Of a stretch of 52,830 nt of DNA, positions 12,201-48,625 are shown in pieces. Both the position numbers and the translations under genes were made by a program. The notes beneath the pieces were generated by a model, which was not told the origin of the DNA, searched no databases, and saw only the letters and a list, made by a program, of their open reading frames with translations. The DNA lies in contig NW_021834295.1 in the NCBI RefSeq assembly GCF_006345805.1, positions 1 through 52,830 on the forward strand, read 5' to 3'. Source of the stretch: Octopus sinensis (lineage: Eukaryota). The stretch's first letter is position 1. Each line of letters starts with the position of its first letter.

Positions 12201-12234
<34 letters not shown>

Positions 12235-12268
12235 TATATGTATGTATGGATGTATGTACGTACGTATG

Positions 12269-12299
<31 letters not shown>

Positions 12300-12965
12300 A
12301 TATGTATGTATGTAGGAATGAATGTATGCATGCATGCATGTATGCACGCATGCATATATGTATGTATGTGTGTACGAACGTATGTGTATATGTATGTATG
12401 TATGTATGCATATATGCATGTATGTATGTATGTATGTATGAATGTACGTATGTATGTACGTACGTATGTATATATGTATTTATGTATGTATGTATGTATG
12501 TATATATGTTTGTATGTATGTATGAATGTATGTATGCTCGAATGTATGTATGTATGTATGTACGTATGTACGTATGTATATATGTATAATTGCATGTATG
12601 TATGTATGTATGCATGCATGTATGCATGTATGTATGTATGTACGAAGCTGTGTATATATGTATGTATATATGTATGCATGTATGTATGTAAGTATATATG
12701 TATGAATGTATGTATGCATGTATGTATGCATGTGTGCATGTATGTATGTTTGTATGTATGTATGTATGTACGTACGTATGTATATATACATGTACGTATG
12801 TATGTATGTATGTGTGTATGTATGTATGCATGTATGTATGCATGGAAACATGTATGTATGTACGTACGTATGTATATATGTATATATGTATGTATGTATG
12901 TATATATGCATGTATGTATGTATGTATGAATGAATATATGTATGCATGCATGTATGCACGCATGC

Positions 12966-12998
<33 letters not shown>

Positions 12999-13528
12999 TG
13001 TATGTATGTACGAACGTATGTATATATGTATGTATGTATGTATGCATGTATGCATGTATGTATGTATGAATGTACGTATGTATGTATATTTGTATGTATG
13101 TATATATGTATGTATGTATGTATGAATGTATGTATGCTCGTATGTATGTATGTATGTATGTATGCACGTACGTATGTATATATGTATAATTCCATGTATG
13201 TATGTATGTATACATGCATGTATGCATGTATGTATGTATGTATGTATGTACGAAAGCATGTATATATGTATGTATGTATATATGTATGCATGTATGTATG
13301 TATGTATGAATGTATGTATGCATGTATGTATGCATGTGTGCATGTATGTATGTTTGTATGTATGTATGTATGTACGTACGTATGTATATATGTATTTATG
13401 TATGTATGTATGTATGCATGTATGTATGTTTGTATGTATGTCTGTATGTATGTATGTTTGTTCGTACGTATGTATATTCGTATGTATGTATGTATGTATG
13501 TACGTACGTTCCTATGTATGTATGTATG

Positions 13529-13560
<32 letters not shown>

Positions 13561-13760
13561 CATGTATGTATGTATATATGTATGTATGCATGTATGTATG
13601 TATGTATATCTGTATGTATGTATGTATGTTTGTAAGCATGTATGTATGTTTGTTCGTACGTATGTGTATTCGTATGTATGTATGTATGTATGTATGTATT
13701 AACGTGCGTGTCTGTATGTATGTATGTATGTATGTATGTATGTATGCATGTACGTATTGT
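9295..13760. repeat. 4.5-kb (TATG)n-based satellite with higher-order structure
   Basis: Units TATG/CATG/TACG/AATG; rare variant words recur at about 600 bp. Confidence 0.95.
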
Positions 13761-19882: not shown

Positions 19883-20100
19883 TTACAAAGAAATTCGATT
19901 GAATTCTGATGATAAACATTCAATTGCACTGAAACAGTCAGTTCTTTCAAGAGCTGCTTTTAATATTCGAAGTGTACGTTTCTCTGGGTCATTGCTTCGA
20001 CACCATTTGAGCAGCATCTGGAAACCTTGTTCCACAACGCTATGAGAATGGTCAAACTTGATGATTTCCAGGTCATGTTGTTTAATTCCTAATTCCCTTC
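19883..20100 (-). CDS. Exon 11, rest of death domain and stop
   Basis: tcttttgcag|GA AGG GAA TTA; [17 protein letters not shown]...[10 protein letters not shown]...LKAALE; TAA at 19885-19883. Confidence 0.9.
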
Positions 20101-26100: not shown

Positions 26101-29100
26101 TAAAGCCAAAAGGTGAAAGAGTCAGAAAACAATGTCTCTTTTAGCATTAATCACATCTAAAAACTAACGAGTGTGAGTATAAAATGTCTAAAAGGATGGC
26201 AAACATTATCATCATCATTTAGCGTCCGCTTTCCATGCTAGCATGGGTTGGACGGTTCAACTGGGTTCTGTGAAGCCAGAAGGCTGCATCAGGCCCAGTC
26301 TGATCTGGCAGTGTTTCTACGGCTGGATGCCCTTCCTAACGCCAACAACTCTGTGAGTGTAGTGGGTGCTTTTTACGTGCCACCGGCATGGGGGCCAGGC
26401 AAGGCTGGCAACGGCCTCGATCAGATGGTGCTTTTTATGTGCCACCGGCACGGAGGCCAGGCGAGGCTGGCAACGGCCACGAATGGATGGTGCTTTTTAC
26501 GTGCCACCGGCACGGAGGCCAGTCGGGGCGGCACTGGCAACGGCCACAATCGGATGGTTTGCTTACTTGTCACCGGCACTGGTATCACAGCTGCAATTTC
26601 CATTGATGTTGATCGACTTCGATTTTGGTTCTGCTTTCTGATATCTGATTTGATTTGGTTTGATTTTGATTTTGATTTTCACTTGCCTCAACGGGTCTTC
26701 ACAAGTGGAGTTTTGTGTCCCAAGAAGGAAAGGTATGTATAAGTCGACTGGCTACATACAAGGTAGAGGCCACGGGTTATGGTCTCACTAGTCTTGCTGG
26801 GCCTTCTCACGCACAGCATACTTCCACAGGTCTCGGTCTCTAGTCATTTCCTTGGTGAGACCTAAAGTTTGAAGGTCGTGCTTCACCACCTCGTCCCAGG
26901 TTTTCCTGGGTCTACCTCTTCCACAGGTTCCCTCAACCGCTAGGGTATGGCACTTTTGCACACAACTATCTTCAGCCATTCTCGTCACATGACCATACCA
27001 GCGCAAACGTCTCTCTTGCACACCACAACTGATGCTTCTTAGGTACAACATTTCTCTCAAGGTACTGACACTCTGTCGGGTATGAACACTGACATTACAC
27101 ATCCATAGGAGCATACTGGCTTCATTTCTTGCGAGCTTACGCATATCCTCAGCAGTCACGGCCCATGTTTCACTACCATGTAGCATGGCTGTTCGTACAC
27201 ATGCATCATACAGTCTGCCTTTTACTCTGAGCGAGAGGCCTTTTGTCACCAGCAGGGGTAAGAGCTTTCTGAACTTAACCCAGGCTATTTTTACTTTAGC
27301 AGTTACACTTTCAGCACACCCACCCCCGCTACTGACTTGGTCAACTAGGTAGCGGAAGCTATCCACTACTTCTAGTTTTTCTACCTGGAACGTGGTAGAA
27401 GTTAGTCTCTGCACATTTTCAGTGTTTATTGCTCCTGAGCATCTGCCACAAACAAAAACTATTTTCCTAGTTAGCCTTCCTTTGACATTGCTGCACCTCT
27501 TATGTGTCCATAGCTTACACTTGGTGCATCTTATAGAGTTTCTACCTACACCTTTTCTACAGATCAAGCAGGGCCATCTACCTGAAGGCGTTTGTGATTG
27601 GTCTACCTTCCTACTTATTAGGACTTTGGTTTTGGCTAGGTTGATTCTAAGGCCCTTCGATTCTAATCCTTGCTTCCACACCTGAAACTTCTCCTCCAGT
27701 TCTGATAGTGACTCAGCAATTAGAGCAAGGTCATCAGCATAGAGGAGCTCCCAGGGGCATCCTGTCTTGAATTCCTCCGTTATTGCCTGGAGGACTATGA
27801 TAAATAGGAGGGGACTAAGGACTGAACCTTGGTGGACCCCAACCTCTACCCTGAATTCTTCACTGTACTCGTTGCCAACCCTCACCTTACTAGCAGCATC
27901 TCTGTACATGGCTTGTACAGCTCTCACTAACCATTCATCTATCCCTAGTTTCCTCATTGACCACCAGATAAGGGATCGGGGGACCCTGTCGAAGGCTTTC
28001 TCCATGTCAACAAAAGCCAGGTACAGGGGCTTATCTTTAGCTAGGTATTTCTCCTGCAGCTGTCTTACCAGGAATACAGCATCAGTGGTACTTTTCCCTG
28101 GCACGAACCCAAACTGCATCTCATCTAAGCTAACTCTCTCTCTAATTAGTTGGGCTATAACCCTCTCCGTAACCTTCATTACCTGATCCAGCAGCTTGAT
28201 ACACCTGTAGTTATTTGTATCTAGGGCATCACCTTTACCTTTGTAGCAGTTGACTATTATGCTGCTACACCAGTCATTGGGTATGACTCCTTCGTGTATC
28301 ACCTGGTAAACTATACGGGTGACTAGGCTATAGCCGACACTACCAGATATTTTGAGCATCTCTGCAGTAATTTCTGATGGGCCTGGGGCTTTCCCTGTCT
28401 TCATGCTTGTAATTGCCTTAACTACTAAGGAACTGTCAACTCGGATTGCTGGTCCCCCTGTTGGGTTGACATTCGGCAGACTCTCTTTATCCCATTCATT
28501 TTCCTCATTCAGCAACCTTTCATAGTGGCGTCTCCAAACCTCTCTCTTTGCATCCTCATTTAGCGCAAGTGAACCGTCATCCTTTCGAACACATTTCTCT
28601 CCTACGACATCACGATTCTCTCTCACACACTGTCTTGCAACACGAAATACCTCAAGTCTTTCATTCTCATGGCGCAGAACATTGGAAAAGTTTTTTCTTA
28701 TCTGCTTCCCCTCTGGCTAAATACACCTGCCTCCTAGCTTCCCTTCTGGCAGTCTGATACACTTCCCTGCTACCACCGTTCTTCCAGTACTTCCAAGCCT
28801 GTTTCTTTTGTCTAATAGCCCTGTCAACAATATTTTTCCACCACCACGTTATTTTGGGTCTTGAGGGGACTTTGTACCAGCCACAGATCTGGTCAGTGGC
28901 TTTCAGCAGGTTGTCCCTTAAAAGCGTCCAGTTGTCTTCTACCCCATGTGAAGCTATACCCCCTTCTATTTCGTCAAAGACTTCAAGTAACATATCTCTA
29001 AATCTCTGTCCATTCGCAGTGTTAATCATATATAGTTACAAAGAAGGAGTTGCATGTCTCCACTACAATATGAAGTGCATTATTCCATACCAGAAAGTTA

Positions 29101-32100
29101 ATGAGACAACAGACAGATCAAGAAAGAATGTTCTTACCAAATCCACTTTTGCTGCGTATGTGTTGTCGACATATGGGGCATTGCTTAAATGTCATTTGAG
29201 AACAGCAATTCTGACAAATAACAGTATGTTGACATGGATGGAGTGTGACAGTAGCCTTTTTCTCTTGACAAAACCAACACCTGTGGAACAAAATATTAAC
29301 ACATCCCATCATTAACATTCATTTATAATAAAATATTTCGTTGTGGACATGTTTAGAGTACAGAATATTAAGGGGCACAACAGTAACCAACAAGAGTAAA
29401 TCGTAAATTCTTCTGTAAACAATTACATACAAGCAGATTTGTGTGTATACAAGTGTCACATTAACATACACATACAAGGGTGGGCTGAAAATATCAAAGG
29501 CTGACTAAGGTGCAGCCTTCCAACATGCCATCCCAGTCAAACAGTCCAACCCATGCCAGCATAGACAACAGACGTTAAATGATGATGATGATGATGACAT
29601 ACACATTGTTAGTGTGTGTTTTAGGTTATTTTCACATGAAAGCGTACATGACAACTGATTGAGTCAGAGAAGAGAGAGAGAGAAAAAAATTGTTGGTAGA
29701 CAGATAAATCCTATTTACTTCTAAATAGCAATTTCAAAATGTGTTCATTCACTTTATTATTTAGTACTACATTTTCATGGAGGTCACCGAACTCTAAAAT
29801 AGTCAGGGATGGATGGTGAGGTATATCTGTCAACACAAGCAATCATGTGAATGTCATCAAAATAGTGTTTTTCGTTTGATCCACTAACAACTGTATTTTC
29901 TGTTTATTGTTCTTATTATTGTTGTGTGGTCTTAAGGCTGCAAGCTGGCAGAATCATTAGCACACGGAGCAAAATGCTTTCTGGCATTTCGTCTGCCTTT
30001 ACATGCTGAGTTCAAATTCAGCTGCGGTTGACTTTACCTTGCTGTTGATAAAATAAGTACCAGTTGAAAACTGGGGCTGTTGTAATTGACTTATCCCCTC
30101 CCTGACCTTGCTGGCCTTGTGCCAGAATTGGAAATCATTATTGTTGTCTTGAGTCAAGACACTAATGACGGAATAATACATTGGGAGAATTCAAACTAAA
30201 TAAACATATAAACATGATTATATACAAAAGAGAAAATGTCCTGGTTTATCTTGGCGTTGCCAGTGAGTACTTACAGTGATTGTAAAAATGTTTTTAATTT
30301 TTCTTTCAAATGTTGATTTTCTATGCAGTCCAATGGGGTCACTTTCTTCTTCTTATTACGATGATATAAGCTGGCTCCTTGGCTGGCAAGGTAACTCAAA
30401 ACTACTATTCCAGAGAGCCTCCTATCCATGTCCAGTTGGAGCTCTCTGCAGCACTGCAAATGATGAAATATAAAACGATGAGTAGAATATTACACAAATA
30501 TATATTGTAGATAAACAAATCATGTCAAATGTAGGAAATATAATGGAACAAGTATCACAAATAACAGAACACAACAAACCAACAAGAACCTATCTTTACA
30601 ACTGGCTTGATAAAGCCAACTGGCCATAACAAAAGAAATACTTATGGAAGAGTATTGTATATATAAATATAACACAACAACATAACAACAAACAATGGCA
30701 AGCTACATTTTGTTACACAAAGGCCATTCTAATTACCATGGGGGTCGTCTGATGGTCTATGGTCACTCAAGATTTTCTGTAATTCCTTATGGAGATTTAA
30801 ACTGGTCGCAACAAGAAGTATTTTTTTAGCAACATATATACTCCTACTTGAATTTGTTTACCATCTGCAAAACTGCCATCAAAACTCAGATTTTTGACAT
30901 CTTCAGATCTGCATCTATGAAAGCAGTCACCCATATTTTCCTACTGGTAATTTCGATAATCCAAATATTGATTGGGAAACGTTTCACTGGTCACAAAGTG
31001 CAACTCATTTCCATAACAACAAACAATGAACAGAGAACACCAAGAACATAATAATTTCTTCAGACACAGCAACAAAACCAACACCAGACAGACATATCCA
31101 AGCATATCAATAATGTTTCCAAAATTTATAAAGAAACATTTTTGGCTGATGTTTGAAGTAAAGGAAGTAAGGATTGGTGTGGTGGTTGAGGCAACACACC
31201 AACACATTATAGTCAAGAAATTGTTGAAACTGTTAGTCTGATAGACAATTCCTATAATAATGGGTCGTTGACTGCTAGAGTAGCTTCTTCTCACCAAAGA
31301 AGACATTACAACAATACATAGGTGACCATTAACTGTCTGAAATACAGTCACACATATTTGGGAATCAAAGAGTTGCTTAAATTCTGCAACAACAGACAAT
31401 AGACACCATCAGATCTAGCAGTGGATAGATGCTGAGGTCTTTCAAACAAACACACACACACACACACATATGTATATATATATATATATATGCACCTAGA
31501 AGTAGTTGATAGCTACTGTTATCTAGGTAATCAAGTCAGTAGTGGAGGTGGATGTGCCAAGAGCATAGTTGCTAGAATAAGATTAAGCAGGGCAAAGTTC
31601 AGAGAGCTTCTATCTTTGTTGGTAACAAAGGGCCTCTATGACTATCTGTCTAGTTACATCGTCATACATACAATCTCGTGGCATTACAATTTTGTGCACA
31701 CATCTTAATGTAAATTCATTCTCATCACATCTCCCTTCATTACAATCATTGCAAGGGGTATTACTGTAGTCAATATACACACAAAGTCCAAGCCCTGGCA
31801 ATATTTGGAATCCTAATTATCAACTTTGAATAAACTCAGTTATATATTCATTATCATACTGATAAAAGAAACTTTCTTCGAAGTCCATGAATATATTTTC
31901 TTTAAATTTAATTGTCCATAAACGAATTTATTTTCCTTTTCCTTTCTTTGAAAATGATTAATGAAATATGCTTTCTAGCAATTAACACAGTTCAACTCGT
32001 TTAACTTGAAATTCGATATTTAAAACAGTTTGTGAATTTCTCTTTCTTAAATTTAAAGACTTATATCTGTCGTTGGTCACCTCTCCTTCATACAGTGATG

Positions 32101-34893
32101 GCAGTGTTTACATGACACATATTTAAGACGGGTTACCTTCTTTACAGTGGAGTGGCCATGCTTTTGAAGGTGAAAGAAGATGGAATATTGTTACATCATT
32201 TTACATTCGTTTTCTATGCTGGCATGGGTTGGATAGTTTGGCAGAAGCTGGGCAGCTGCAGAGCTGCTCAGGCACCAATTGCCAGTTTTGGCATAGTCTC
32301 TGCGGTTGCATGCCCTTCCTAATGCCAACCACACACACACATATTCACAAACAATTTTTAAAACTTACCTCATCTAAAATGGGAATGGGTTCCACCTCAG
32401 AATGGAACATCTCTTTTTTTATTATTGAGAGGTGCAAACAATTATTGCCATCATTGTTGACAGCATTTATGTTTGCACCATTTATAATAAGTTTATGGAT
32501 TATTCCGAGGTGGGCCCTGGACACGGCTTCCATCAATGGTGTCATTTTCTTATGATTCTCGATATCCAGTTTCACTGAATCCTTTGTGGAAGTAAAAATA
32601 GAAATTGAAAATGTACATGGGATATGTGTAAGGGACATGATAAATCTATTAAGAGGTCTTAAACAGATTGTTTCAGCCTAATCTATATTTATCTCTCACT
32701 ATAGTAAATTTTAGGGGAGCAGAACAAGAGTGAACATATAATTAGCAGATCAAAACTAGTAAAGAAGAATTATGATGTTGCTATATTAATAGGGGTTCAT
32801 AAACAGGTGAGTTGGTTAGTGTCCACATCCTTAACATTCCTGTACATACACACACATATACATGAATGTTATGGAAGTGAGATACACACAAACACATATA
32901 TATATATATAGATATATTTACACACACACACCATATATATATATATATATATACAGGAGTGGCTGTGGTAAATAGCTTGCTTACAAACCACATGATTCCG
33001 GGTTTAGTTCCACTGCATGGCACCTTGAGCAAGTGTCTTGTACTATTATCTCGGGCTGACCAAAGCCTTGTGAGTGGATTTGGTAGACAAAACTGAAAGA
33101 AGCCCTCGTATATGTGTGTGTGTGTTGTGTTATGGAAGTGAGATACACACACACACACACACACATATATATACAGGAGTGGCTATGGTAAATAGCTTGC
33201 TTACCAACTACATGATTTCGGGTTCAGTCCCACTGCATGGCACCTTGAGCAAGTGTCTTGTACTATCATCTCAGGCTGACCAAAGCCTTGTGAGTGGATT
33301 TGGTAGACAAAAACTGAAAGAAGCCCATCGTATATGTCTGTGTTTGTCCTCCCAACATTGCTTAACAATCGATGCTGGTGTGTTTGCATCCCTGTAAGCT
33401 AGCGATTTGGCAAAAAGGATCAACAGAATAAGTACTAGGCTTACATAGAATAAGTCCTGGACTCGATTACATGTTGTGGCGAGAGTCACAAGAACCCATG
33501 CAAGAACAGACTTGACTGAACGACTATGAATAGTAGCAGTCTGAGTGAGAGACCAGAGAGAGTAGGTGTTAATTGCAGGAAGTCGTAAGGTGTTGTTTTC
33601 ATTGTTTGTTGGTTTGTGTATGGATTGTTGTTGTTACCCTGATCCGTAATATGTTTTATTGTTACTACAAGGTTATAGTATAAACAGTATCGTGTCATAA
33701 TAATTGGTGATACAATCCCAATACATTCATACATAAAAATATACACATATATCATCATCATCATCGTTTAACGTCCGCTTTCCATGCTAGCATGGGTTGG
33801 ACGGTTCAACTGGGGTCTGGCAAGCCCGAAGGCTGCACCAGGCCAGTCAGATCTGGCAGTGTTTCTACAGCTGGATGCCCTTCCTAACGCCAACGACTCC
33901 GAGAGTGTAGTGGGTGATTTTATGTGCCACCGACACAGGTGCCAGACGAGGCTGGCAGACGGCCACGCTTGGATGGTGTTTTTATGTGCCACCGACATAG
34001 GTGCCAGACGAGGCTGGCAGACAGCCACGCTCGGATGGTGTCTTTTTTATGTGCCACCGACACAGGTGCCAAACGAGGCTGGCGAACGGCCACGATCGGA
34101 TGGTGTTTGTTACGTGCCCACAGCACGGAGGCCAGTCGATGCGGTACTGGCTACGGCCACGTTCGGATGGTTTTCTTGTGTGCCACCGGCACTGGTACCA
34201 CAAGGATACAAATTCCATTGATGTTCATCTAGTTTGATTTGATTGATTTGATTTGATTTGATTATATATATATACTAGCAGTATCGCCCGGCGTTGCTCA
34301 GGTTTGTAAGGGAAATAACTATAAAGCATTTTTAGAGAGTTATAGCCAAAAAATGGAAAAAAATATGGTAAATTTTTTTTTGAGAGTTAAAAAAGGATTG
34401 AGTTGCGTCCCCTAGACAGTTTGTGGTTCGTGTTTCTGATTCTCGACCCCATGTCGAATTTATCGATTTTTTTCAGAACTGGGGGAACTTTTCAAAATTT
34501 TGGCTGCGTTAGTTTTGAATTATGACATTGGGCTATGTGTGTGTCAAGTTTCATCAGAATCGGTTGAAAGCCGTGGTCAGGGTGAGGGTACGAGAAAACA
34601 GACACACAGAAACACGCACAGACAAACTGCCGTTTATATATAGATATATATATATATATATATATATATACTGAGATTCAGTAAATAGTATTTTATACAT
34701 AAATATAAGAGGGAACCACTATGTGGAAGCCGTTGCGCTAAAAAGAGATCCACATAGGTCTCAACCACTAAGAATTGATCTCTAGAAAATCATTTACTGA
34801 ATCTCAGTTTTTTATACGCTAGACCACTGGTCTTAAATTGATGTTATTAAATTAATATCCAATCTTTCACACACATTTTGATTTTAATTTTAA

Positions 34894-36923: not shown

Positions 36924-38117
36924 TTTATACATATGTGCAGAGGGAAAAAAGCAGCCAAGAAGCCAAATAAATTATTGGACACAAGATAAAATGCAGACAC
37001 CAACAATTTACACATAACACACACACACACACACAACATGAGAGACAGACATTAAAAGATGATCATCATCATTATTTACATTATTTACATTTGATGGATA
37101 TTTGTCCTCATCTTGTTTGTTGTTAACACAATGTTTCGGCTGATATACCCTCCAGCCTTTGTCAGGTGTCTTGAGGAAATTTCGAACCTATGTTCTCATT
37201 CCAAAGGTATTTTTCAATGTTATTATTAATATTATTATTATTATTATTATTCAAGTCACGCCTGTAACTGAACTCGAATCTTGGGGTTAGTAGCCCGAAC
37301 TATTAACCACTATGCCATATGCCCACGGGCATATGGCAGAGTGGTTGATGATGATATATATAATCTGATATATATGGGTTGAATTCATAATTCTTGTTTT
37401 TTTTCTGACTGACCATTAAAGATAGTACTATCAGCAGTGGTGGTCAGTTGGACTGTCATCACCACTACTACTATCATCATTGTTATCACAACATAATTAT
37501 TCTTCACAGACCCGAGACCTGCCATTAAAAGGTTGCTGCAGTGCAGTTGATTAAATCTACCCCCAGAATTTCACTGGTATTTTGATGATATAAATATTGA
37601 ATACTAGAGAGAGGATATAATATGTATTTGTTAACTAACCTGGGCCAGCATCAAAGATACCACACCATAGTGTTGCCTGAAAGTTATACAAAGAGGAGAG
37701 GAAAAACAATTATTATTAGATTAACCAATGAAAACAAATGTAATTAGGTCATTATAACCTAATTACATCAATAATTACATACACACAAATACACATTATA
37801 CATGTGTGTATATATATATATGAGTTAAGATAAAATCTGGGCTACGTATGTTTCAAAGCAGGTGGAACATCAGAACTGGTAAATATCCAAACGAGGTGTA
37901 TACCACAGGCCACTCTTCAGACCAAGGGTGTCTTGATTAAATGAAGTTTACACTGTCAATAGGAGGCACATGTTCAAACACAGAAGATGCGGTAAGGGAA
38001 AAACCAACAACCTTGCACCCCAATAAACCCCTTTTGTTCCTGAAAGTTGTTTCTTACATTTTCTATGGATTGTTTGAAGCTCACCTTCCTACATCTCAAT
38101 CCTTGGATCCTACATAT

Positions 38118-38156
<39 letters not shown>

Positions 38157-41100
38157 AACATTTTATAATTATATACATAATTATAACACATGTACTGTGT
38201 TTTTCTCGGAGAATTAATGGTGGTAATAGTGTCTTTCGATGTCTATTTTTCAGTGCGTGGTGAGGAGCAAGCCAAGCCCTTGTTATAATTATGTATATAA
38301 TTATAAAATGTTTATAAAAATTTACTTATGAGGTTATATTTCCGCGCTGACCACTTGGTAAAAATCATTTCTGATTTTACCCTTTAATATCGCATCAAGT
38401 GGCTTCTAGCAGCAGAAGCCTGAACTTCAATGGCCTTGCCCTACAGAAACGTTTCCGGCCACTTTTGGGTACCCCCTCATATATTCGATATACTCTCTAC
38501 ATTATAGACCAACGATATATATACACACCTGAATAAACACGGCAATCTATATATGGTATGATGAACAACTGTTATATAGCCATGAAATTTAGGATGGGGA
38601 GAGGCATTAATGTGGATTATAAGGACCCCAGTACATGACTGGTATTGTACTTTATTAGCCTAGCAAAGATGGAAAGACAAGGTGACCTCAGCGGGATTTG
38701 AACTCTGAACATAAAGTGTGGTAAATAAATACCACAAGGTATTTTGCCCAACAGCAATCAGACACAAAAACAAGAGAAAAGAGGGAGGACAATTTATTAA
38801 ATGAACCCCTGGATATTACTGGTACAGATTTTCACTCCAGGTTGTTAATAAATACTCTGGCAGGATTTGAACTTGGAACATAAACAGATCAAACTAAACA
38901 CTTTAAGGGAATGATTCTGTATTTAGCCCAGGGTCAGAGGAAAGAGGAAAATTACAAGAGAGAGGGGGTGAGGTGTTTTATATGGAATGAAAAGAAGAAA
39001 AGGAAAGATTTGAACTTGTAACGTTGAGGTAACGAAGGATGAGATGAAGTAAAGAATCTAGTCAGGTAACAACAGCAACAATAATAATTATGATGATTAA
39101 TTAATGAAGTAGGTTACAGTGTCATTAGAGTGTGAGAGAGAGAGTTGAAGCACGACGTCCCATGGTGGGATTATGACATGAATGACTCAAAACAAGAAAA
39201 CAAACGTTAATGAAAACATTAAAGAAACAGATTTGGATAATCCAAATCCATTGGGGACTTACTTTTGAACTGCCAGATGGAGAGGAGTGTCACCATCATT
39301 GTCCGCTTTATTGGCATCGATGCCATTTTGTTGTAGGAGGAGTTTAGCTGTGTCTGTGTGTCCATTCTGACAGGCAAGATGGAGAGGTGTATGACCACTG
39401 TTGATCACCACCCTCACATCAGTGCCATTCTGTTGTAGGAGAAGTTTAGCTGTGTCTGTGTGTCCATTATACGAGGCAAGATGGAGAGGTGTATGACCAC
39501 TGTTGATCACCACCCTCACATCAGCGCCATCTTGTTGTAGGAGAAGTTTAGCTGTGTCTGTGTGTCCATAATACGAGGCAAGATGGAGAGGTGTATGACC
39601 ACTGTTGATCACCACCCTCACATCAGCGCCATCTTGTTGTAGGAGAAGTTTAGCTGTGTCTGTGTGTCCATTCTGACAGGCAAGATGTAGAGGTGTCCGA
39701 CCATCGTTGGTCACCACCCTCACATCAGTGCCATTCTGTTGTAGGAGGAGTTTAGCTGTGTCTGTGTGTCCATTATACGAGGCAAGATGGAGAGGTGTCC
39801 AACCATCGTTGATCACCACCCTCACATCAGCGCCATCTTGTTGTAGGAGGAGTTTAGCTGTGTCTGTGTGTCCATTATACGAGGCATGATGTAGAGGTGT
39901 CCAACCATCGTTGTCCACCACCCTCACATCAGTGCCATCTTGTTGTAGGAGAAGTTTAGCTGTGTCTGTGTGTCCATTGATAGAGGCAAGATGTAGAGGT
40001 GTCCAACCATCGTTGTCCACCACCCTCACATCAGTGCCATCTTGTTGTAGGAGAAGTTTAGCTGTGTCTGTGTGTCCATAATTAGAGGCAAGATGTAGAG
40101 GTGTCCAACCTTTAATATTTCGCTGAGTGACCTAAAAAAGATAAACAATAAAGACATTAAAGATGGCGTCAAGTGGATGGGGGGGGGCAGCGCAAAAATG
40201 AAAAATTTCAAAAAAAGAGAAAGAATCAGATTAATAAACAGGTGGAATGAATTTGGAGAGGAGTAAATAAATGAGGTTCATATCTTACCTGTACCCACAG
40301 ACACACACATATATATATATATACATATAAACACTCACACACATATATATATACACTCTCACGCAAGGAAATGAGCAACTTTCGAAAGAGTCCCCCCACC
40401 AATTTGTTTATTTAAAAAATTTTTTTGCCAAAAAACCCCGATTTCGGACACGGAGGTTCGGGAAAATTGCCAAAAAATCGGCAGTGGAATTTCCACCCCC
40501 TCCAAAATTCTTCAACTTTGACTTTTTTCCCCCAACACTAACCCTAACCCCAACTACAGAAATGTTTTGAAATTTTTGTCCGAATCATCATCTCCGTATT
40601 TTTCCGCATATTCTTAAAAAAAAATTGTGAAAAAAGTAAAGAATGAAGGAAATGGGGGTGGGGGTAATTTTAAAATGCCGATTTTTGCCAATTTTTACCA
40701 ATTTTTTTGCAGATTCGTATTTCCCTTAACCGAAAAGCGGGATTTGTGTCGGGGAAAAAAATTTAAAGAAAGGGTGGGTCTTTTTTAGGAAACGAAATTT
40801 GGGGCACTAAACTGTATGTATACATCATATACATATAACACACACATACATATATATACATATCTATATACACAAATATAATTGTATTCGCTAACCTGTA
40901 AAATGTTATTTCCTTTGCTACTTAACAGGACTTTGACTACATCTTCATAGTTCTTCCTCACAGCCAGATGTAGAGGTGTGTTGCCGTCTGAGTCCTGCTT
41001 ATTAACATTTGCTCCCCTGGAAACTAAGGAGGCCACTGCATCAATTTTACGGCTGAAAGGAAGAAAAAAACATAAAACATCACAGACATTCACTTAACAG

Positions 41101-42723: not shown

Positions 42724-45700
42724 ATAAGTTAAACTCCAGTGTTTGACCCGAGCAAAAAAAAATAGTGCAATAGGTATAAAATAAAATGTAGTAAACGAAT
42801 ATGTAAAAAAAATACGTTGGCGAATGAGGGGTGGTGGAGACGACTCGGAAAATTCACACGATCAATCTCACAGGATCCGAAAACTCAACGTTTTAACATC
42901 GTTTACTACATGTTGTTTTACACCTATTACACTTTTTGTTTTCATTTTTGGGACCGGTTGTCGAGTGGGGTTACCGGATCGTGTGAATCATCCGAGTCCG
43001 CACCCCACCCACTCGCCCCGTCACAAAAATTGAACAAAAGTAGAGTACCGGGTGTAAAATAATGTGTAAAAAACGAAAATAAAGAACAAAAAATTCGCCG
43101 ACGAATGGGGAAGCGGTGAGATTTTAATTTTCCGAGTCGTCTCCCCACCTCCTGTTCGCCATATTTTTTTTTCGATTGACGCAGGAGTGGCTGTGTGGTA
43201 AGTAGCTTGCTTACCAACCACATGGTTCCGGGTTCAGTCCCACTATACTATAGCCTCGGGCCAACCAAATCCTTATGAGTGGATTTGGTAGACGGAAACT
43301 GTAAGAAGCCCGTCGTATATATGTATATATATATGTGTGCGTGTGTGTTTGTGTGTCTGTGTTTGTTCCCCTAGCATTGCTTGACAACCGATGCTGGTGT
43401 GTTCATATCCCCGTCACTTAGCGGTTCAGCAAAAGAGACTGATAGAATAAGTACTGGGCTTACAAAGAATAAGTCCTGGGGTCGAGTTGCTCGATTAAAG
43501 GCGGTGCTCCAGCATGGCCGCAGTCAAATGACTGAAACAAGTAAAAGAGTAAGAGTATTCGTTTACTACATGTTGTTTCACACCTATTGCACTATTTTTT
43601 CCTTTTTTCTTTGCTTGGGCCAAACACAAGATTTTAACCTAGTGTTTCCCTCCTCTGTCTTCTCCATCTGAAGGAGCCATGTCCCGCTTCTAATGCAAGA
43701 CACCTTTCTCTCCAGCAATATTAGCTCCCCCACCCCACCACCTCAACCAGTCGAGAGGTCTTTGTCTCGCAATTAATTGGTGACCTCACTGGTTCGGATG
43801 GCATGTAAAAGGCATCCAGTACACTCTGCAAAGTGGTTGGTGTTAGGAAGGTCGTCCAGCCATAGAAACCAAACCTAAGCAGACAGTAGTGTTTGGTGTG
43901 GTCTTCTGACTTGTCTGTTCCTATCAAACCCTCCTACCCATGCCAGCATGGAAAAGGAACATTGATGACGATGATGTGTGTGTGTGTGTGTTTGTGCAAA
44001 ATTCTGGAACAATTTGTGACTGCAGAAGCTATAGAAACTAACAAGAACTTCAAACATGTTTTATTGTCCAGAGATGACCTTATGAAGCACAATTCAAAAT
44101 ATAATAGATCTCAAAATGTGTTGAGTGAGTTGCAGATGGAGGTGAGAAATAATTTCTGTAAGAAATTTACAGATTATTTACTGCCAAAACAAGCTAGAGA
44201 ATCTTTCTTGTTGCTTTAGATCTCAAATAACATTTTCTTTGGAGAAAAATTGATCGATCTCTCCATAATCAATATGAAGAGAAGACACTGAATCACACTG
44301 GGTCAATTTTAAGAACTGTTGGCTCTCAAAGAATATCTCCAAAACAAAAATAATCTGTTTTGACAACAAATAACGAAAAAGATTTTTGTGATCCAATGAA
44401 GGGGATTCATGGAGAAAATGAGAAAAAGATGTTATTTGGTTACTACTATCATGCTGTTATCGTGTCACACTGCCACTATTATGGTATCTTTGGATATTCA
44501 AATAGTCTGGAATTGCAAAAAATTTCAAAACAAAAGCAGATCTCAAGATTTTAGTTAATTCAAGTCTTACCTTTTCACAGCATAATGTAAAGCTGTGCGA
44601 CCTTTTTCGTCACTCATGTCCATATTGGCTCCAGATTCTATCAAGAAGGCTATTAGACTTGTGCTGCCCTGTTCACAAGCTGCCATTAAGAAAGTTTTAC
44701 TGTCTGAATTTATTTGGTTGACCTGAAGAGAAGAAAGAAAAGATATATAAAATATATCAAAGGAGAGAGAGAGATAGAGAGATAGGAGGGAAGAATAGAG
44801 AGAGAGAGAAAGGAGAGAAGAAAGAGAAGTAAAGAAGAAGATGCTGGAGTGAAAGAAAGGGATATGAAAGACAAAGAAAGAAGATACACACACACACACA
44901 CACACACACACAGTGCAACATGAAATAAAATGTCTTGCTGAAGAATACAACACACAGCCCAGACTGGGAATCAAACTCACTATCTCCTGATTGTGAACCT
45001 GTTGCCCTAACCATTGAGCCATTCACCTTCATATACATATACACACATACATACACACACACATATGTATGTATTTATGTATGTATGTATGTACGGGTGG
45101 AGGAACTCTCGAGAGTCAACGGCCATCCAATAAATGTCTTTAGGTTGTATCATGCACGGGAACATAGAAATAATCGGACTGAATACCCGATCGCGCGGTT
45201 AAACCATTGGGAGTGAAGGACTCCTAGCCTTTGTTAGGGCATCCTTCTAGGCGAAGGTAACTCAGGTAACTGGGATAACTCCGGCATAAAACCTGCAGCT
45301 CAGTGGTTACCGATGATGTTGACTTGTTCTTCTTTTCGGATTATGGCTGCTGTTGCTTAGTGAGTGGGATTGACTCAGTGCACAGCCTTTCCTTACTTAA
45401 ATAAAATCTTCTTGCACAGGCATTGCACGATAACAACATTGATTAAGCTTCGTACAATGGCCATACTCGATAACGAGGGGGCAGCCACCATATATATGTA
45501 TGTATGTATGTATAGTTCCAGTCATTCAAGTCCCACCACTGGTCTAAGTACAGTAAAGCTACAACTTCAAATTCTCACAAACATTTAACTTAGACATTGT
45601 TACCTAATTAGATTACTATATCCATACTTTGTTATATATATACTGATATGTATGCATGTATGTATGTATAGGATGACTCACGAGTCATCTTCGTAGTCAT

Positions 45701-48625
45701 AAAGCGAGACAGATGAGTGACAACCTGGCCACTGGTGGTGGTGTAACACACCATACTAATCATATCTGTCGGGCATGTGGAAGAGAGTGTAATTCGGCAG
45801 GAGGACTTAAACGACATGCAAAGGTACATGAAGCCCAGTTACAAATACAGCCGGCTTTTTACCGGTAAAGGTTTTAGTTGCCAATTTTGTACAAGACATT
45901 GTAGATCTTTAGCTGGGCTAAAAAGTCACATTCGATCACAGCATCAATAACAGTTAAGTTTCGTGCAATGGCCATACTCGATAACGAGGGGGCAGCCATC
46001 ATGTATAGGTTGTGTCTCCAATCTGGTATGCTCATTTTGTCCAGAATGCCAATCTACTGGAAGCTGTCCATAGATGTACAACCATAAAATTAGCCTCACT
46101 CAATCACTTATCATTTCTTAAATGTATTGCTTCTCCATGCATCGACAGAGAATTTTGTCATTTCTAGCAACTCACTTGATCCCACAAGATTATCCCTCAT
46201 CTTTCAACAACAACTTTGACCACTTCTGGAATTTAATATCTTTACCACTCTCAGACATGCTTATAAAATAAAAAAACAAAGCCATTCCAGTTTCCATGGT
46301 ATCGGAAACAAATATTTTATGCTCAGAATTGTCAGGGTACGGAATAAACTATCTACATTGGTTGTTTGCAGTCAGAACACTGTAACCTTCAAAAACACCA
46401 CACTTTCTGTAATTCAGAAACACTGGTTCCTATGCACCCTTTCCTTTTTATGGTTCTTTTACTGCTCCCTTTTCTGTCTTTTAGTGTTCTATCCCATGTA
46501 CGATGGCATGCACTTTAGATGGTCATTGGTGTCTTTCTTTACATGACTTGTACTTTCTGTATTTTCATAGAAGTGGACAGAGCAATATCGAGGGAAATCA
46601 GTACAAATATACCGTTTCATGGTAGATGGAAGAGTCTTTCTTATGAAACATAAGATGTCTGTCTTAGTAACAACCTCACTTTTGTCCGGCTGAAGAGGGA
46701 AAAAAATCAGTTGAGAAAATATCCCAGTTTATTACTGGTATGTATGATATCAATTATGAATTGAAGAGAACACTGACAAGATTTCAAACGTGGTATCTGA
46801 TAGGAGACACACAGGTAAATAAGAGAAACCATATAAACAATGCAACTGTAGGGATTAGGCCATAAGATGGTGTATAAAGTAACTGAAAAGGGGAAGAGCT
46901 ATAAAGGGTCAAAACCTCAGAAATAATTGTGTAGATTCTGAATATATCAGACTGGATTTTAGTTTAGTATTCCCTGGTAAAGCTCATGAAATTCTACACT
47001 TTGTTATCACTGATGTCTGGCATAGTAGCACTTTCATTTCATGCTATAATGATGAAAGAGGTTTAAGAAATGGTGAGAGAAGAACAGGATGTTTGAAATG
47101 AAGCATGGATCTTCAGATGTCATATGTCTGGTGAAACAGCAATGTGGGATCTACTTGGAAAAGAATGAAAGCAAATCTACAAGAAAGGTGTAGAGCACAG
47201 GTAAATCAAGGTGTAACAGGTAAACAGGTAAATAAAGATTGTTTAGTTCATGCATAAGCTCAAGGAAAAGATTGATAATCTATTTATGTTAGTCACTGAA
47301 TCTATTACAAAGTAATTACTTGTAATTAGACATCTGTGACATCTTTGGAACGACACCAATCACAACTAAATATGAGCAACTATGGAAAGGTAGACACAAA
47401 TGAAAAGAACAATGAGAAAATAAGAAATATTATGAAAGTAGTGATCAGAATTTTGAGCCTAAATGCGGCAGCAGTATCAGGGCTTACATTAGTTTGTAGC
47501 CATACAATATTTAAAAAGGTGTGAGTGGTTCATACACAACTGTATTACAGCTGTACAAACAACACTATCGACTCCACCTTGAGGAAAACACCTACCCTCA
47601 CTAACTGGCAGACATTCACCCACCATTGAAATACATGTATGATGGTCATCAAGAAAATAAAGGATGTTTTTTTCTGCATTTCACACCATTTGTCAGCTAT
47701 CTTTCCCTTCCAAATTAAAAGCCTCATTTTCTGGTCTCTTACCAAGAGTATCTCTATAGATTTTACAGAATCATTCCACCCACCACTCCCTAACCATGAT
47801 GGTTCTCTGATCCAAACACAACTACACATTGAGTTTCATATATTTGTACCACCACAGCCGCCTTGACTCCCTGGTCCTTATAAAATTTTCCACAATCCCT
47901 ACCCAATGGTAGTACTACTCTATTAGAGAAGCCCTGTTTTATAATTTTTGCTGATAGTGTCCTATCTGCTGACTACCAGCCAGTCATTCTAACTTCCAAT
48001 ATTTCAATTATGAAGTAAAAAGTCATAAACAACCATTATCTTTGTCCCTTTGGGTATCTTTTTCTATTCAAAGAGCACCAGTACAGTTCCATAAAGCCAG
48101 TTCAAGCAGGGGTCTGATTCCTACGTGACTCCCCAGTGTTTTGGTTATGTTTGACAACTTCTGCAAAAGAAATAGTGTAGCCCTTGACATCGGTAAAACC
48201 TTCAACTGTGTATGGCAAGAGAATTTCTTGACAAAGTCACCATTTATCTATAGGATCCATCTGTCCCCCATCTCTTGGACTGAATATTTCCTGCCAGAAT
48301 ATTCCATTGCAGTGTGTGAGGATGGGTTTCTCTCTCACTGACATTCCATCAATTCTGGCATACCTCATTGTCTGGTTGAATATTTATAAAAAGTGACAAT
48401 GATGAGGATTAGAGGAAAGAGGTAAAGAAAGATATGAAATATTATGGACAAATATATCTGGTTATTTAGGAACATTTAATATTGTGTATAAAATAATAAA
48501 CAAACATTCAACATTGAAGAAGCAATATAAAGTAAACTTACTGTTTCAGGATTTTCTTTGATAAATCGTTTCACATCTTCAAAGTTCCCAGTCAGAATCT
48601 TGCTTATAATCTTATTTACATCCAT
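19883..48625 (-). CDS. Multi-exon gene: ankyrin repeats (~15) - RING (C3HC4) - optional 17-aa linker cassettes - death domain; mind bomb-like E3 ligase derivative
   Basis: Hand-built model, minus strand: 48625-48542, 44722-44571, 41052-40896, 40131-39263, 37676-37640, 32581-32369, 30453-30275, 29280-29138, [25484-25434, 25318-25268, 25152-25102, 24986-24936, 24820-24770], 23713-23642, 20100-19883. All introns are GT-AG and phases chain 0,2,0,2,0,0,2,1,(1x5),1 into one open frame: 792 aa with all cassettes, 707 aa with none. The last ankyrin with an insertion, followed by a RING, resembles MIB1/MIB2 (recalled, not searched). Confidence 0.85.
20480..20810 (-). mobile_element. Degenerate RTE-like LINE C-terminal fragment
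   Basis: [14 protein letters not shown]... resembles the 'QLRxxGHxxRM' segment; many stops. Confidence 0.4.
21905..22695 (+). mobile_element. RTE LINE 3' fragment
   Basis: [26 protein letters not shown]...KTWDEMMKH followed by RTE 3' UTR and (GAT)n tail. Confidence 0.85.
23642..23713 (-). CDS. Exon 10, first part of death domain ([24 protein letters not shown])
   Basis: tttatttcag| 72 nt |gtgagt; phase 1 to 1; joins the next exon as KWQELGRELGI, the death-domain helix-2 signature. Confidence 0.85.
24770..24820 (-). CDS. Cassette exon 9e ([17 protein letters not shown])
   Basis: ttcttatttcag| 51 nt |gtgagt; phase 1 to 1. Confidence 0.6.
24936..24986 (-). CDS. Cassette exon 9d ([17 protein letters not shown])
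   Basis: ttcttttttcag| 51 nt |gtgagt; exon sequence identical to 9c. Confidence 0.6.
25102..25152 (-). CDS. Cassette exon 9c ([17 protein letters not shown])
   Basis: ttcttttttcag| 51 nt |gtgagt; phase 1 to 1. Confidence 0.6.
25268..25318 (-). CDS. Cassette exon 9b ([17 protein letters not shown])
   Basis: ttcttatttcag| 51 nt |gtgagt; phase 1 to 1. Confidence 0.6.
25434..25484 (-). CDS. Cassette exon 9a ([17 protein letters not shown])
   Basis: ttatttcag| 51 nt |gtgagt; phase 1 to 1, no stop. Confidence 0.65.
26208..29020 (-). mobile_element. 5'-truncated RTE-clade LINE with long RT ORF (26788-28626)
   Basis: 612-aa ORF with [28 protein letters not shown] and YADD motifs plus a Cys-rich finger; upstream frameshifted piece 28667-29020; 3' UTR and (GAT)n tail near 26208. 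Confidence 0.95.
29138..29280 (-). CDS. Exon 8, C3HC4 RING finger (MIB/IAP-like)
   Basis: ttccacag|G TGT ... TTT G|gtaaga; CWFC-x11-CQH-x3-CQNC-x8-CPICR; 143 nt, phase 2 to 1. Confidence 0.9.
29935..30137 (+). mobile_element. Degenerate tRNA-derived SINE
   Basis: gagctggcagaa-like head, B box GAGTTCAAATTC, tail aagtaccagt...ggccttgtgcc. Confidence 0.6.
30275..30453 (-). CDS. Exon 7, end of last ankyrin and C-cap (CCRELQLD...[24 protein letters not shown]...)
   Basis: tttgcag|TGC ... CT|gtaagt; 179 nt, phase 0 to 2; resembles the MIB-type terminal ankyrin with insertion. Confidence 0.85.
31490..31635 (+). mobile_element. RTE LINE internal fragment
   Basis: [28 protein letters not shown]...LLVTKGL matches the 26788-28626 ORF. 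Confidence 0.85.
32369..32581 (-). CDS. Exon 6, ankyrin repeats ([20 protein letters not shown]...GNNCLHLS...PILDE)
   Basis: ttccacaaag|GAT ... GAG|gtaagt; 213 nt, phase 0 to 0. Confidence 0.9.
32954..33466 (+). mobile_element. tRNA-derived SINE with locally duplicated head (heads at 32954 and 33174)
   Basis: caggagtggct...ggttcagtcccactg...gtggatttggtagac; same family as 34931-35309 and 43180-43556. Confidence 0.8.
33758..34235 (-). mobile_element. RTE 3' UTR/tail with five internal ~63-bp repeats
   Basis: Homologous to 26208-26600; gtgcc(a/c) units at 33924, 33986, 34051, 34114, 34180. Confidence 0.8.
34275..34644 (-). mobile_element. Non-autonomous Helitron-like element
   Basis: Reverse complement of 51364-51749; TC start, hairpin, CTAG end. 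Confidence 0.8.
34931..35309 (-). mobile_element. Full-length tRNA-derived SINE
   Basis: Head cgcaggagtggctgtgtggtaag, B-box-like GGTTCAGTCCC, tail (GAGTAAAA)n. Confidence 0.85.
35440..35985 (+). mobile_element. RTE LINE AP-endonuclease fragment
   Basis: [15 protein letters not shown]...CCIQE...[10 protein letters not shown]...AGDFNGHVG; frameshifts and stops. Confidence 0.85.
35995..36178 (-). mobile_element. Second RTE endonuclease fragment, inverted
   Basis: Minus strand ...[10 protein letters not shown]...[20 protein letters not shown] (frameshifted). Confidence 0.7.
37090..37345 (-). mobile_element. tRNA-derived SINE-like element
   Basis: Minus strand AGTGGTTAA...GATTCGAGTTCAG B-box-like; (ATT)n inside. 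Confidence 0.5.
37640..37676 (-). CDS. Exon 5, 37-nt exon completing an ankyrin ([13 protein letters not shown])
   Basis: Long pyrimidine tract ...aactttcag|G ... CAG|gttagt; phase 2 to 0; supplies exactly the missing helix 2 of [10 protein letters not shown]. Confidence 0.8.
39263..40131 (-). CDS. Exon 4, tandem array of 8 complete plus 1 partial 34-aa ankyrin repeats
   Basis: ctttttag|GTC ACT CAG ... CAA AA|gtaagt; 869 nt open, phase 0 to 2; 102-bp period; [34 protein letters not shown]. Confidence 0.95.
39292..40107 (-). repeat. 8 x 102-bp coding tandem repeat
   Basis: Invariant core GGACACACAGACACAGCTAAA in every unit. Confidence 0.95.
40896..41052 (-). CDS. Exon 3, ankyrin repeats ([31 protein letters not shown]...NNILQ)
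   Basis: cctttcag|C ... CAG|gttag; 157 nt, phase 2 to 0; GANVN and GNTPLHLA motifs. Confidence 0.9.
41230..41900. mobile_element. MITE with TIRs and TA target duplication (Tc1/mariner-like)
   Basis: Perfect 20-bp inverted core CCCCCGACGAATTTGTTTCC (41242-41261 / 41870-41889), extending imperfectly to CACAA termini, each flanked by TA. Confidence 0.75.
43180..43556 (+). mobile_element. tRNA-derived SINE (same family as 34931-35309), small internal deletion
   Basis: Direct homology. Confidence 0.85.
43780..43975 (+). mobile_element. RTE 3' tail fragment
   Basis: ggttggtgttaggaagg...cccatgccagcatggaaa...gatgacgatgatg. Confidence 0.7.
44571..44722 (-). CDS. Exon 2, ankyrin repeats ([19 protein letters not shown]...[10 protein letters not shown])
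   Basis: ttctcttcag|GTC ... AAG|gtaaga; 152 nt, phase 0 to 2; ankyrin motifs FLMAA..G and GRTALHYAV. Confidence 0.9.
45740..45998 (+). mobile_element. LINE 3' end encoding two C2H2 zinc fingers (frameshifted)
   Basis: [21 protein letters not shown] and [22 protein letters not shown]; 3' motif aatggccatactcgataacgagggggcagcca is also present at about 45457-45488. Confidence 0.6.
47650..48380 (+). mobile_element. Degenerate L2/CR1/Jockey-like LINE RT fragment
   Basis: [13 protein letters not shown] (RT motif 3-like) and [18 protein letters not shown]. Confidence 0.6.
48542..48625 (-). CDS. Coding exon 1 ([28 protein letters not shown]), N-cap-like degenerate ankyrin
   Basis: Acceptor ttttcattcaaaag|AC-ATG (exon starts at 48627); donor ACA|gtaagt; 84 nt, phase 0; joins the next exon in frame. 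The true start could lie further upstream. Confidence 0.7.

Follow-up and report, generated by a model that had tools for sequence, protein, structure and literature searches.

How can a tandem array keep its protein scaffold almost unchanged while its units differ from one another at the residues expected to meet a target? The question is raised by an exon in a 52,830-nt stretch of the Octopus sinensis genome (contig NW_021834295.1, positions 1 to 52,830 of the forward strand; this whole stretch is called the window here). The minus strand of the window carries eight 102-bp units that encode near-identical ankyrin (ANK) repeats. An initial annotation had proposed that these units form a natural counterpart of the designed ankyrin repeat proteins (DARPins), with an invariant scaffold and shuffled codons on the binding face. 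The analysis described here indicates that the array is the central exon of an intact, apparently Octopus-specific gene, and that it has probably been diversified in the germline as a variable recognition module.

An array of eight near-identical ankyrin units

A tandem repeat was detected at 39321-40110 with Tandem Repeats Finder (TRF; period 102, 7.7 copies, 93% matches, score 1231). Read on the minus strand, the array consists of eight in-frame ANK units of 34 amino acids (40110-39295) and a partial ninth. Of the minus-strand frames, a single one is open across the array. The array placed earlier at 39292-40107 is the same one in a register shifted by 3 nt, as judged from TRF and the codon table; in the register used here the conserved Gly is position 1. 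The product of the array exon begins with VTQRNIK, continues through the eight full units and ends with 11 residues that start the next repeat. The exon is bordered by the acceptor tcttttttag (followed by GTC) and the donor gtaagt (preceded by CAAAA), and Pfam ankyrin profiles match its product in eight stretches (Ank_2, E 6e-130; Ank, E 1.6e-89). The exon and its units, the latter taken from the codon table, are given below.

39263-40131, minus strand: array exon, 869 nt, phase 0 in and phase 2 out
40009-40110, minus strand: unit 1
39907-40008, minus strand: unit 2
39805-39906, minus strand: unit 3
39703-39804, minus strand: unit 4
39601-39702, minus strand: unit 5
39499-39600, minus strand: unit 6
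39397-39498, minus strand: unit 7
39295-39396, minus strand: unit 8, with a divergent tail
39263-39294, minus strand: 11 residues that open the ninth repeat, which caps the ANK domain at its C-terminal end and continues in the exon at 37676-37640

Mean amino-acid identity among the window units is 0.86 over 272 residues. The tail of unit 8 (IDANKADND) diverges from units 1-7 and leads into the C-terminal capping repeats. A tail of this type is common to the last unit of all the related loci described below, and of the paralogs that have one such unit only.

The helix-2 block had been reported to change by synonymous substitution only. This is the case in codons 12-23, where the codon table gives CTT/CTC at codon 19 and CAA/CAG at codon 23. 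Replacements in the window units were found where they had been listed, at codons 2 (W/R/H), 7 (L/H), 24 (D/N) and 26 (T/A), at codons 9-11 (SNY, SIN, SYN, CQN, SYY) and at hairpin codons 32 and 34 (D/I/T-N-D/S). The recurrences in non-adjacent units are also present, TGT-CAG in units 5 and 8 and the codon-11 TAT in units 1 and 6, and all four combinations of TGG/CAT with TAT/AAT occur. The clustering of the replacements is not due to chance, because random seven-codon sets match the observed non-synonymous diversity of the window units with P = 0.0017.

The DARPin consensus, said to be that of Binz et al. 2003, reads DxxGxTPLHLAAxxGHLEIVEVLLKzGADVNAx. The earlier proposal that the varying sites are mostly DARPin contact sites could be upheld in part. 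Five of the seven DARPin-randomised positions vary in the window, as had been counted, but so do codons 7, 9, 26 and 32, which are fixed in DARPin libraries. The equation of the DARPin 'z' with the D/N site (codon 24) is approximate only, the unit being 34 residues long against 33 with the extra residue at codon 24. HMMER alignments to 33-residue ankyrin repeats open a gap at this unit position.

An AlphaFold2 (AF2) single-sequence model of the ANK region gave predicted local distance difference test (pLDDT) values of 80-95 over the array. In every unit of the model, helix 1 comprises positions 4-10 and helix 2 positions 14-22. Foldseek comparisons returned template modelling (TM) scores of 0.84 to ankyrin-1 and 0.83/0.87 to a 12-repeat DARPin. 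On this model the array is predicted to fold as a stacked ankyrin solenoid. Placed by alignment and helix periodicity, the variable positions correspond to the canonical ankyrin target-contact surface. In helix 1 a single turn separates position 7 from positions 10 and 11 (i, i+3, i+4), and position 7 should therefore point to the same face.

Variation and reshuffling among five collinear arrays

Collinearity with the window was found at four loci, in O. sinensis and O. vulgaris, whose flanks are 92-99% identical to it. They are listed here with their identity to the window.

L001, O. sinensis scaffold VCDQ01005398.1: 95-98.8%; 10 units, one codon deleted
L002, O. vulgaris chromosome OX597842.1, 29.7 Mb: 93-98%; 14 units, 1-bp insertion in unit 8
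L003, O. sinensis chromosome CM016885.1, 10.1 Mb: 89-97%; 4 units
L004, O. sinensis scaffold VCDQ01005283.1: 92-98%; 7 units, collinear over the whole gene

The five arrays contain 4, 7, 8 (window), 10 and 14 units, which share one scaffold sequence; the loci have unit types in common and arrange them in different orders. The flanking introns of the window and L001 mismatch at about 0.8-2%. In the non-array exons, the proportion of synonymous differences (pS) among the window, L001 and L002 is 0.02-0.034. The units of the five arrays (window and L001-L004) were pooled into a set of 43, and those of the first three loci form a set of 32.

All 43 units are distinct in nucleotide sequence, and 25 of the 102 nucleotide sites of the unit are variable. 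In the 32 units of the first three loci, 20 of the 34 codons show no difference at all, even at synonymous sites, and most of these 20 are also unchanged in all 43 units. Synonymous polymorphism among the 43 units is found only at codons 2, 5, 9, 19 and 23, apart from four singletons. Codon 10 is represented by eight codons for seven residues and codon 2 by six codons for five residues (W, C, R, H, S). Five residues each occur at codons 32 and 34, and four each at codons 7 and 11. When DARPin library positions 2, 3, 5, 13, 14 and 33 (plus 26) were compared with the units, unit positions 2, 10, 11, 34 and 24 were found to vary strongly (enrichment P 0.0002-0.002).

Diversity was estimated as Nei-Gojobori non-synonymous (piN) and synonymous (piS) diversity, with the DARPin-randomised positions fixed in advance. 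Over all codons piN/piS is 1.06. It is 0.014 at the 24 framework codons (piN 0.0009, piS 0.067) and 3.3 at the seven DARPin-randomised positions (piN 0.28 against a piS of 0.085 over all codons; codon bootstrap 95% interval 1.5-10.9, P(<=1) = 0.0015). The ratio is 2.9 when 'z' is mapped to position 23, 3.5 at the six fully randomised positions and 2.9 in the window's eight units alone, and P(piN/piS <=1) ranges from 0.0015 to 0.027 across the pre-chosen site sets. In the pooled set, random seven-codon sets reach the seven-position piN with P = 0.0002. Amino-acid identity among the 43 units (0.85) is lower than nucleotide identity (0.91). The invariance claimed earlier for the scaffold is thus borne out by the 20 unchanged codons of the 32 units and by the framework diversities of the 43. 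The initial annotation had also named, as its own criterion, a ratio of non-synonymous to synonymous rates (dN/dS) above 1 at the variable sites; at the pre-chosen DARPin sites piN/piS is about 3.

The four-gamete test fails for 22 of the 28 informative biallelic site pairs of the pooled units. The minimum number of recombination events (Rm) within the 102-bp unit is at least four, in the pooled set and in the window alone alike, so recombination within and between units is needed, as had been argued from the four codon combinations. Mean unit distance is about 0.09 both within and between arrays, and most units have their closest match in a different locus and at a different place in the array (nearest pairs W3-V8, W7-V11, W8-V2, S7-P1 and T6-V14). 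The equal distances and the cross-locus nearest neighbours suggest that all the arrays took their unit variants from one older pool. The units have a synonymous diversity (0.085) higher than the divergence between loci (0.02-0.034), and the unit variants therefore appear to predate the split of the loci. Most of the difference between the arrays comes from units that were reshuffled, gained or lost. The concerted evolution, diversifying selection and recombination invoked earlier were thus supported as far as scaffold, shuffling and selection are concerned, but not for ongoing concerted evolution, given the equal distances. One ancestral amplification followed by reshuffling fits as well as concerted evolution.

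The recurrence of TGT-CAG, which the initial annotation had pointed out, is partly explained by an old CQN unit type that is also present in other loci. A three-unit higher-order duplication (units 3-5 = 6-8) was considered as its source. The fit is partial, units 5/8 differing by 5 nt and units 4/7 by 7 nt, and the duplication was rejected on the block pattern of the hairpin codons, on the TRF result, which contains no 306-bp period, and on the occurrence of the CQN type at the other loci. CpG hypermutability accounts for about five allele pairs only. Adenine-targeted mutagenesis of the kind carried out by diversity-generating retroelements was likewise rejected, since the variable sites fall on all four bases. 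The only reverse transcriptase in the window belongs to an insertion of the long interspersed nuclear element (LINE) type that is absent from the four related loci.

Two of the related arrays show irregularities. In unit 8 of the O. vulgaris array (L002:2927-3030, OX597842.1) a 1-bp insertion, CAACAAGAATGGC, causes a frameshift in the middle of the 14 units. It reads as a misaligned hybrid of the common codon 23-24 haplotypes CAA-GAT and CAG-AAT, and the public annotation splits the gene at this point. A genuine unequal exchange, pseudogenisation or a consensus error of the assembly would each account for the frameshift. At L001:12460-13560, the public model of protein P0122 treats a stretch of the 10-unit array as an 'intron' and leaves the last unit out of frame. 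The genomic array of L001 is open in one frame, and predicted proteins of the family therefore seem to under-report their arrays.

The gene around the array and its Octopus relatives

The window is eukaryotic in character, with long microsatellites, canonical introns and the LINE-type reverse transcriptase. The array exon belongs to a minus-strand gene that extends from an ATG at 48625 to a stop at 19883 in 14 exons, or 15 with a fifth mini-exon. The gene model was built with homologous Octopus proteins as guides, including a tblastn search with P0121. All its splice sites are canonical, and the open reading frame (ORF) is unbroken over 775 aa (counting four mini-exons). The exons other than that of the array are as follows.

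48542-48625, minus strand: exon 1, start codon and 28 residues (tblastn of P0121; donor gtaagt)
44571-44722, minus strand: exon 2, N-terminal ANK repeat (homology and splice sites)
40896-41052, minus strand: exon 3, second ANK repeat (homology and splice sites)
37640-37676, minus strand: exon 5, 37 nt, helix 2 of the capping repeat (homology and splice sites)
32369-32581, minus strand: exon 6, last ANK repeat and linker (homology and splice sites)
30275-30453, minus strand: exon 7, linker (homology and splice sites)
29138-29280, minus strand: exon 8, RING finger zf-C3HC4_3 (Pfam E 2.5e-10 to 2.6e-11)
24770-25484, minus strand: five 51-nt phase 1-1 mini-exons, each a 17-aa module, inside a 166-bp tandem repeat (25484-25434, 25318-25268, 25152-25102, 24986-24936 and 24820-24770)
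23642-23713, minus strand: exon for the N-terminal half of the Death domain (homology and splice sites)
19883-20100, minus strand: last exon, C-terminal half of the Death domain and stop (Pfam Death E 5e-8)

The protein is laid out as two N-terminal ANK repeats, eight near-identical ANK repeats and two C-terminal ANK repeats, followed by a linker, a RING finger, four to five 17-aa modules and a Death domain. In the full 775-aa model Pfam finds 12 Ank stretches, the zf-C3HC4_3 RING (40 bits against a cut-off of 27, E 2.5e-10) and the Death domain PF00531 (32-33 bits against a cut-off of 22.6, with profile positions 3-78 of 86 covered). The same scan of the full model found no MIB/HERC2, ZZ or NOD (NACHT/NB-ARC) domain. 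Only 28 residues lie ahead of the first ANK repeat.

The mini-exons lie in a second tandem repeat, at 24669-25498 on the minus strand between the RING and Death exons (five 166-bp copies, 95% matches). Each copy comprises a 51-nt mini-exon, whose 17-aa module starts VCPK(S/C/F), and a 115-nt intron. The number of modules varies among the paralogous proteins P0126, P0133 and P0137. Some copies have CPxC and others CPxS, so that pairs of modules might form or lose a zinc knuckle.

Searches with the non-array exons returned dozens of ANK-RING-Death paralogs in O. sinensis, O. vulgaris and O. bimaculoides, the members being automatically named 'MIB2-like', 'ankyrin-3-like' or 'RF_0381'. A word-indexed protein search with the linker-RING-Death part gave Octopus proteins only. 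A HMMER scan of 1.84 billion cluster representatives (query P0124) gave more matches that span linker and RING, and all 10 of the 10 looked up are from Octopus. The gene family thus was found only in Octopus by these sequence searches and is likely to be specific to it. A full-text search of the literature gave no paper on the Octopus ANK-RING-Death family or its arrays.

With the array exon as query, the protein search returned only generic ankyrin proteins of 30-48% identity. The word-indexed search with the array missed P0121 and P0122, in which the same units are present; only the non-array exons retrieved the family. Repetitive segments seem to be masked in the index, and similar arrays elsewhere may therefore be missed systematically.

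The number of central 34-aa units per paralog ranges from 1 to 14. The older paralogs P0123 and P0126 have the GHTDTA(T) unit once only, as the last full unit beside ordinary diverged repeats. Because these paralogs carry the unit once only, the window array is likely to have arisen by its amplification; the direction of the event, with the last full unit before the capping repeat being copied, is suggested by the same comparison. Other paralogs amplified different 34-aa units independently, such as YGSKDVVELLLKHKDTDVNAV, present three times in O. vulgaris P0064, and a GYTPLHWAC.GGHTDIVHLLL unit, present twice in O. bimaculoides P0138. In the family as a whole, the central ANK exon appears to be a hot spot where units are repeatedly amplified.

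The 3' part of the gene has a different pattern of identity. The window's two Death exons (19883-23713) are 96% identical to those of L004 and only about 70% identical to those of L001 and L002, which are otherwise 93-99% identical to the window upstream of the Death exons. This split suggests that paralogs have exchanged whole 3' exon blocks.

The LINE-type insertion mentioned above occupies 2.8 kb (26210-29017) in the intron after the RING exon and is found in the window only. Besides a 62-bp tandem repeat it contains a 612-aa reverse-transcriptase ORF, at 26788-28626 on the minus strand, that Pfam matches to RVT_1 with E 2e-32. In each of the four related loci no more than 4-6 bp lie between the sequences that flank it, and it is therefore likely to be a young insertion. 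Very long (TATG)n microsatellites occur at 9296-13757 (4.4 kb, about 1100 copies), 3-382, 2776-3858 and 6071-6461. The segment 223-3144 resembles 3699-6438, a tandem segmental duplication. An interspersed element with an internal 62-65-bp tandem repeat (GGTGCTTTTTACGTGCCACCGGCACGG...) is present in two copies, at 26365-26522 and 33913-34200, and occurs in related loci too.

Competing explanations and known counterparts

In the explanation that we favour, the array would descend from a single repeat, the last of the full units ahead of the capping repeat, which was amplified. Unequal crossing-over and gene conversion among the 102-bp units in the germline would change their number and order and recombine the variable codons, with exchange taking place within a locus and probably between recently duplicated loci. 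Strong purifying selection would keep the fold-determining framework, and selection for amino-acid change would act at the beta-turn/hairpin (positions 32-34 and 2) and on one face of helix 1 (positions 7, 10 and 11). The array would then be the variable target-recognition module of a RING-type ubiquitin ligase, and the Death domain would wire the protein into death-domain signalling complexes. A regulator of innate immunity or cell death that tracks fast-changing ligands would be the most plausible role. The diversity data point to selection for change rather than tolerance at the binding positions, and the array may bind variable ligands. The RING has predicted E3 activity and may ubiquitinate these ligands or the protein itself.

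Several points weigh against this explanation. The sample is small (34 codons with 5-8 synonymous polymorphisms), and unit pairs are not independent, so that the piN/piS intervals are broad and reach down to 0.97-1.5, according to the site set. Within-array distance equals between-array distance and gives no sign of ongoing homogenisation. In the non-array exons, the ratio of non-synonymous to synonymous differences (pN/pS) between loci is 0.7-1.1, and the whole gene therefore seems weakly constrained. The loci compared may be alleles, orthologs or recent paralogs, their Death exons matching the window at 96% in one case and at about 70% in two. The frameshift in L002 and the codon deletion in one O. 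sinensis array may indicate that copies are decaying, or that such arrays contain assembly errors.

The alternative that survives best, although we regard it as unlikely, is a young duplication followed by tolerance. Surface positions would drift (omega about 1) under a constrained framework, the diversity itself not being selected. An apparent excess of piN over piS could then be attributed to the few synonymous sites, to a piS lowered by homogenisation and to some CpG hypermutability. The all-codon piN/piS of about 1.0-1.1 is in line with such drift, as are the bootstrap lower bounds near 1 for some site sets and the pN/pS near 1 of the non-array exons. Several variants are CpG transitions (TGG/CGG, CAT/CGT, CAG/CGG, TCG/TCA, CAC/CGC). 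The variable positions are also the least conserved ones in all ankyrin repeats, which is why DARPins were randomised there. However, drift predicts a piN similar to piS at free sites, and a value about three times piS was observed. Single codons differ by 2-3 nt and have up to eight alleles, whereas adjacent framework codons are unchanged in 43 units, synonymous sites included. CpG transitions make up about 5 of at least 35 allelic steps, many changes being transversions, and the amino-acid identity among units below their nucleotide identity also argues against tolerance.

An origin by incomplete homogenisation is improbable, more so than drift. Here the units would be old, diverged ANK repeats whose frameworks were overwritten by gene conversion, and the variable codons would be ancestral leftovers. 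The motifs SQN/TNS, CRY and DKA of P0123 do resemble CQN, INS/TNS, CRN and DKA, and the excess of unit synonymous diversity over locus divergence is as expected from old units. Conversion tracts would nevertheless have to skip single codons (2, 7, 9-11, 32-34) in 43 units, which is very unlikely without selection for diversity. Several non-synonymous alleles occur only once and look young (codon 10: ATC, CGG, TCT and CGT; codon 7: CAG; codon 32: GCC).

Artefact or decay, that is, mis-assembly of a 0.8-1.4-kb tandem array or a functionless pseudogene family, is very improbable as a general explanation. It could draw on the frameshift in the O. vulgaris array, the 3-bp deletion in one O. sinensis array, the location of two O. 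sinensis loci on unplaced scaffolds and the predicted protein of one locus that splices out part of its array. Against it, the window gene is intact over 14-15 exons, and a framework piN/piS of 0.014 could not result from neutral decay. Five independent arrays keep frame within their units, one 1-bp event excepted, and the units differ at about 9% of sites, which long reads can resolve. This reading stays relevant to individual copies such as L002. Somatic diversification, in which intra-exon recombination among the 102-bp units would give cells such as haemocytes different ANK-RING-Death receptors as an ankyrin counterpart of the lamprey variable lymphocyte receptors (VLRs), is the least credible of all: a tandem array of highly similar units with past recombination offers a permissive substrate only, germline events explain everything observed, no flanking donor cassettes, recombination signal sequences or dedicated enzyme were found in the window, and the predicted protein is intracellular (RING and Death domain; no signal peptide seen in the N-terminal exon).

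Germline diversification of a recognition module, the explanation we favour, has its closest known counterpart in the ANK, TPR and WD repeats of fungal NOD-like receptors (NLRs), such as Podospora anserina Pa_3_8560 and the nwd/het-e family, whose repeats are about 85% identical (PMC4986451, and Paoletti et al. 2007 cited in it). Wild isolates carry different numbers of repeats, closely related copies in Podospora having from 7 to more than 16, and shuffling takes place within and between paralogs. Positive selection on the ANK repeats acts at about five positions of the concave face, in the inner helix and the hairpin (PMC4986451). Dyrka et al. 2014 (PMC4986451) found highly internally conserved repeats in just 0.8% of the ANK/TPR/WD proteins of metazoans.

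The octopus units are likewise about 85% identical (0.86 in the window, 0.85 in the pooled set, over 272 residues, against a threshold of about 85% over at least 100 residues). Their number varies from 4 to 14 in related loci, which may be alleles or paralogs and may include assembly error, and piN/piS is 2.9-3.5 at pre-chosen binding positions placed by alignment. The proposed role, rapid diversification of an intracellular recognition domain tied to cell-death signalling, would also be shared. Unlike the fungal proteins, the octopus gene has no NACHT/NB-ARC domain and combines the repeats with RING and Death domains; it is not an NLR. The host is an animal, and hypermutation of the repeat-induced point mutation (RIP) type is not available in octopus. 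The evolutionary mode would thus be one already known from fungal NLR repeats, and the animal host and the RING-Death architecture are new.

With DARPins (general description in PMC8683736) the array shares self-compatible stacked repeats, an identical framework, capping repeats at both ends and diversity largely at the beta-turn and the end of helix 1. It differs in being natural, with about 35-38% sequence identity, and in its 34-residue unit, which has one extra residue after helix 2. Positions 7, 9, 26 and 32 also vary in octopus, whereas there is next to no variation at unit positions 33 (DARPin position 2; slight) and 31 (DARPin position 33; none). Cys and Trp are common at the octopus variable sites. 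'DARPin-like' is a fair anatomical description, by analogy and not by ancestry.

Other systems resemble the octopus gene in part. Like MIB1/MIB2, it has ANK repeats followed by a C-terminal zf-C3HC4_3 RING; unlike them, it has a Death domain and an ANK block that is variable in length and hypervariable. An orthologous relationship to MIB1/MIB2 was rejected, as the MIB/HERC2, ZZ and MIB repeats are missing from the full model, with its 28 residues before the first ANK repeat. ANKDD1A/B-type proteins also combine ANK repeats with a C-terminal Death domain, but they carry neither a RING nor an internally homogenised array, and in the family searches the octopus gene was found to share with them domains only and no further sequence relationship. 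TRIM5alpha offers a functional analogy, an E3-ligase module joined to a recognition domain under positive selection at its contact surface, although its recognition fold is SPRY and its architecture is another one. In ASB/SOCS-box proteins, a second functional analogy, ANK repeats are the substrate receptor. The lamprey VLRs, built from leucine-rich repeat (LRR) cassettes, share with the array a solenoid, an invariant scaffold, hypervariable concave-face residues and a variable repeat number. They arise by somatic, gene-conversion-like copying from flanking cassettes, whereas the octopus evidence is germline and such cassettes were not seen.

Three properties come together in this Octopus subfamily: an ultraconserved scaffold, differences in unit number and order between near-identical loci, and an excess of replacements at target-contact sites. 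Such a signature has served to recognise fast-diversifying receptors, namely the NLRs of fungi, the LRRs of plants and the VLRs of jawless fish. The array would also be a natural parallel to DARPin engineering, in which evolution also randomises helix-1 position 7 and hairpin position 32, both fixed in the libraries. Cephalopods are not known to have adaptive immunity, and descriptions of diversified recognition families in this group are few. It is a tentative thought, and one that we hold less probable than its contrary, that the family is a germline-hypervariable and individually polymorphic octopus repertoire for innate immunity or allorecognition, which would act as a TRIM5-like E3 restriction or cell-death switch and as a counterpart of the fungal NLR sensors. 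If the arrays are polymorphic among individuals and expressed in immune cells, the family would be a candidate cephalopod recognition repertoire tied to ubiquitination and death-domain signalling.

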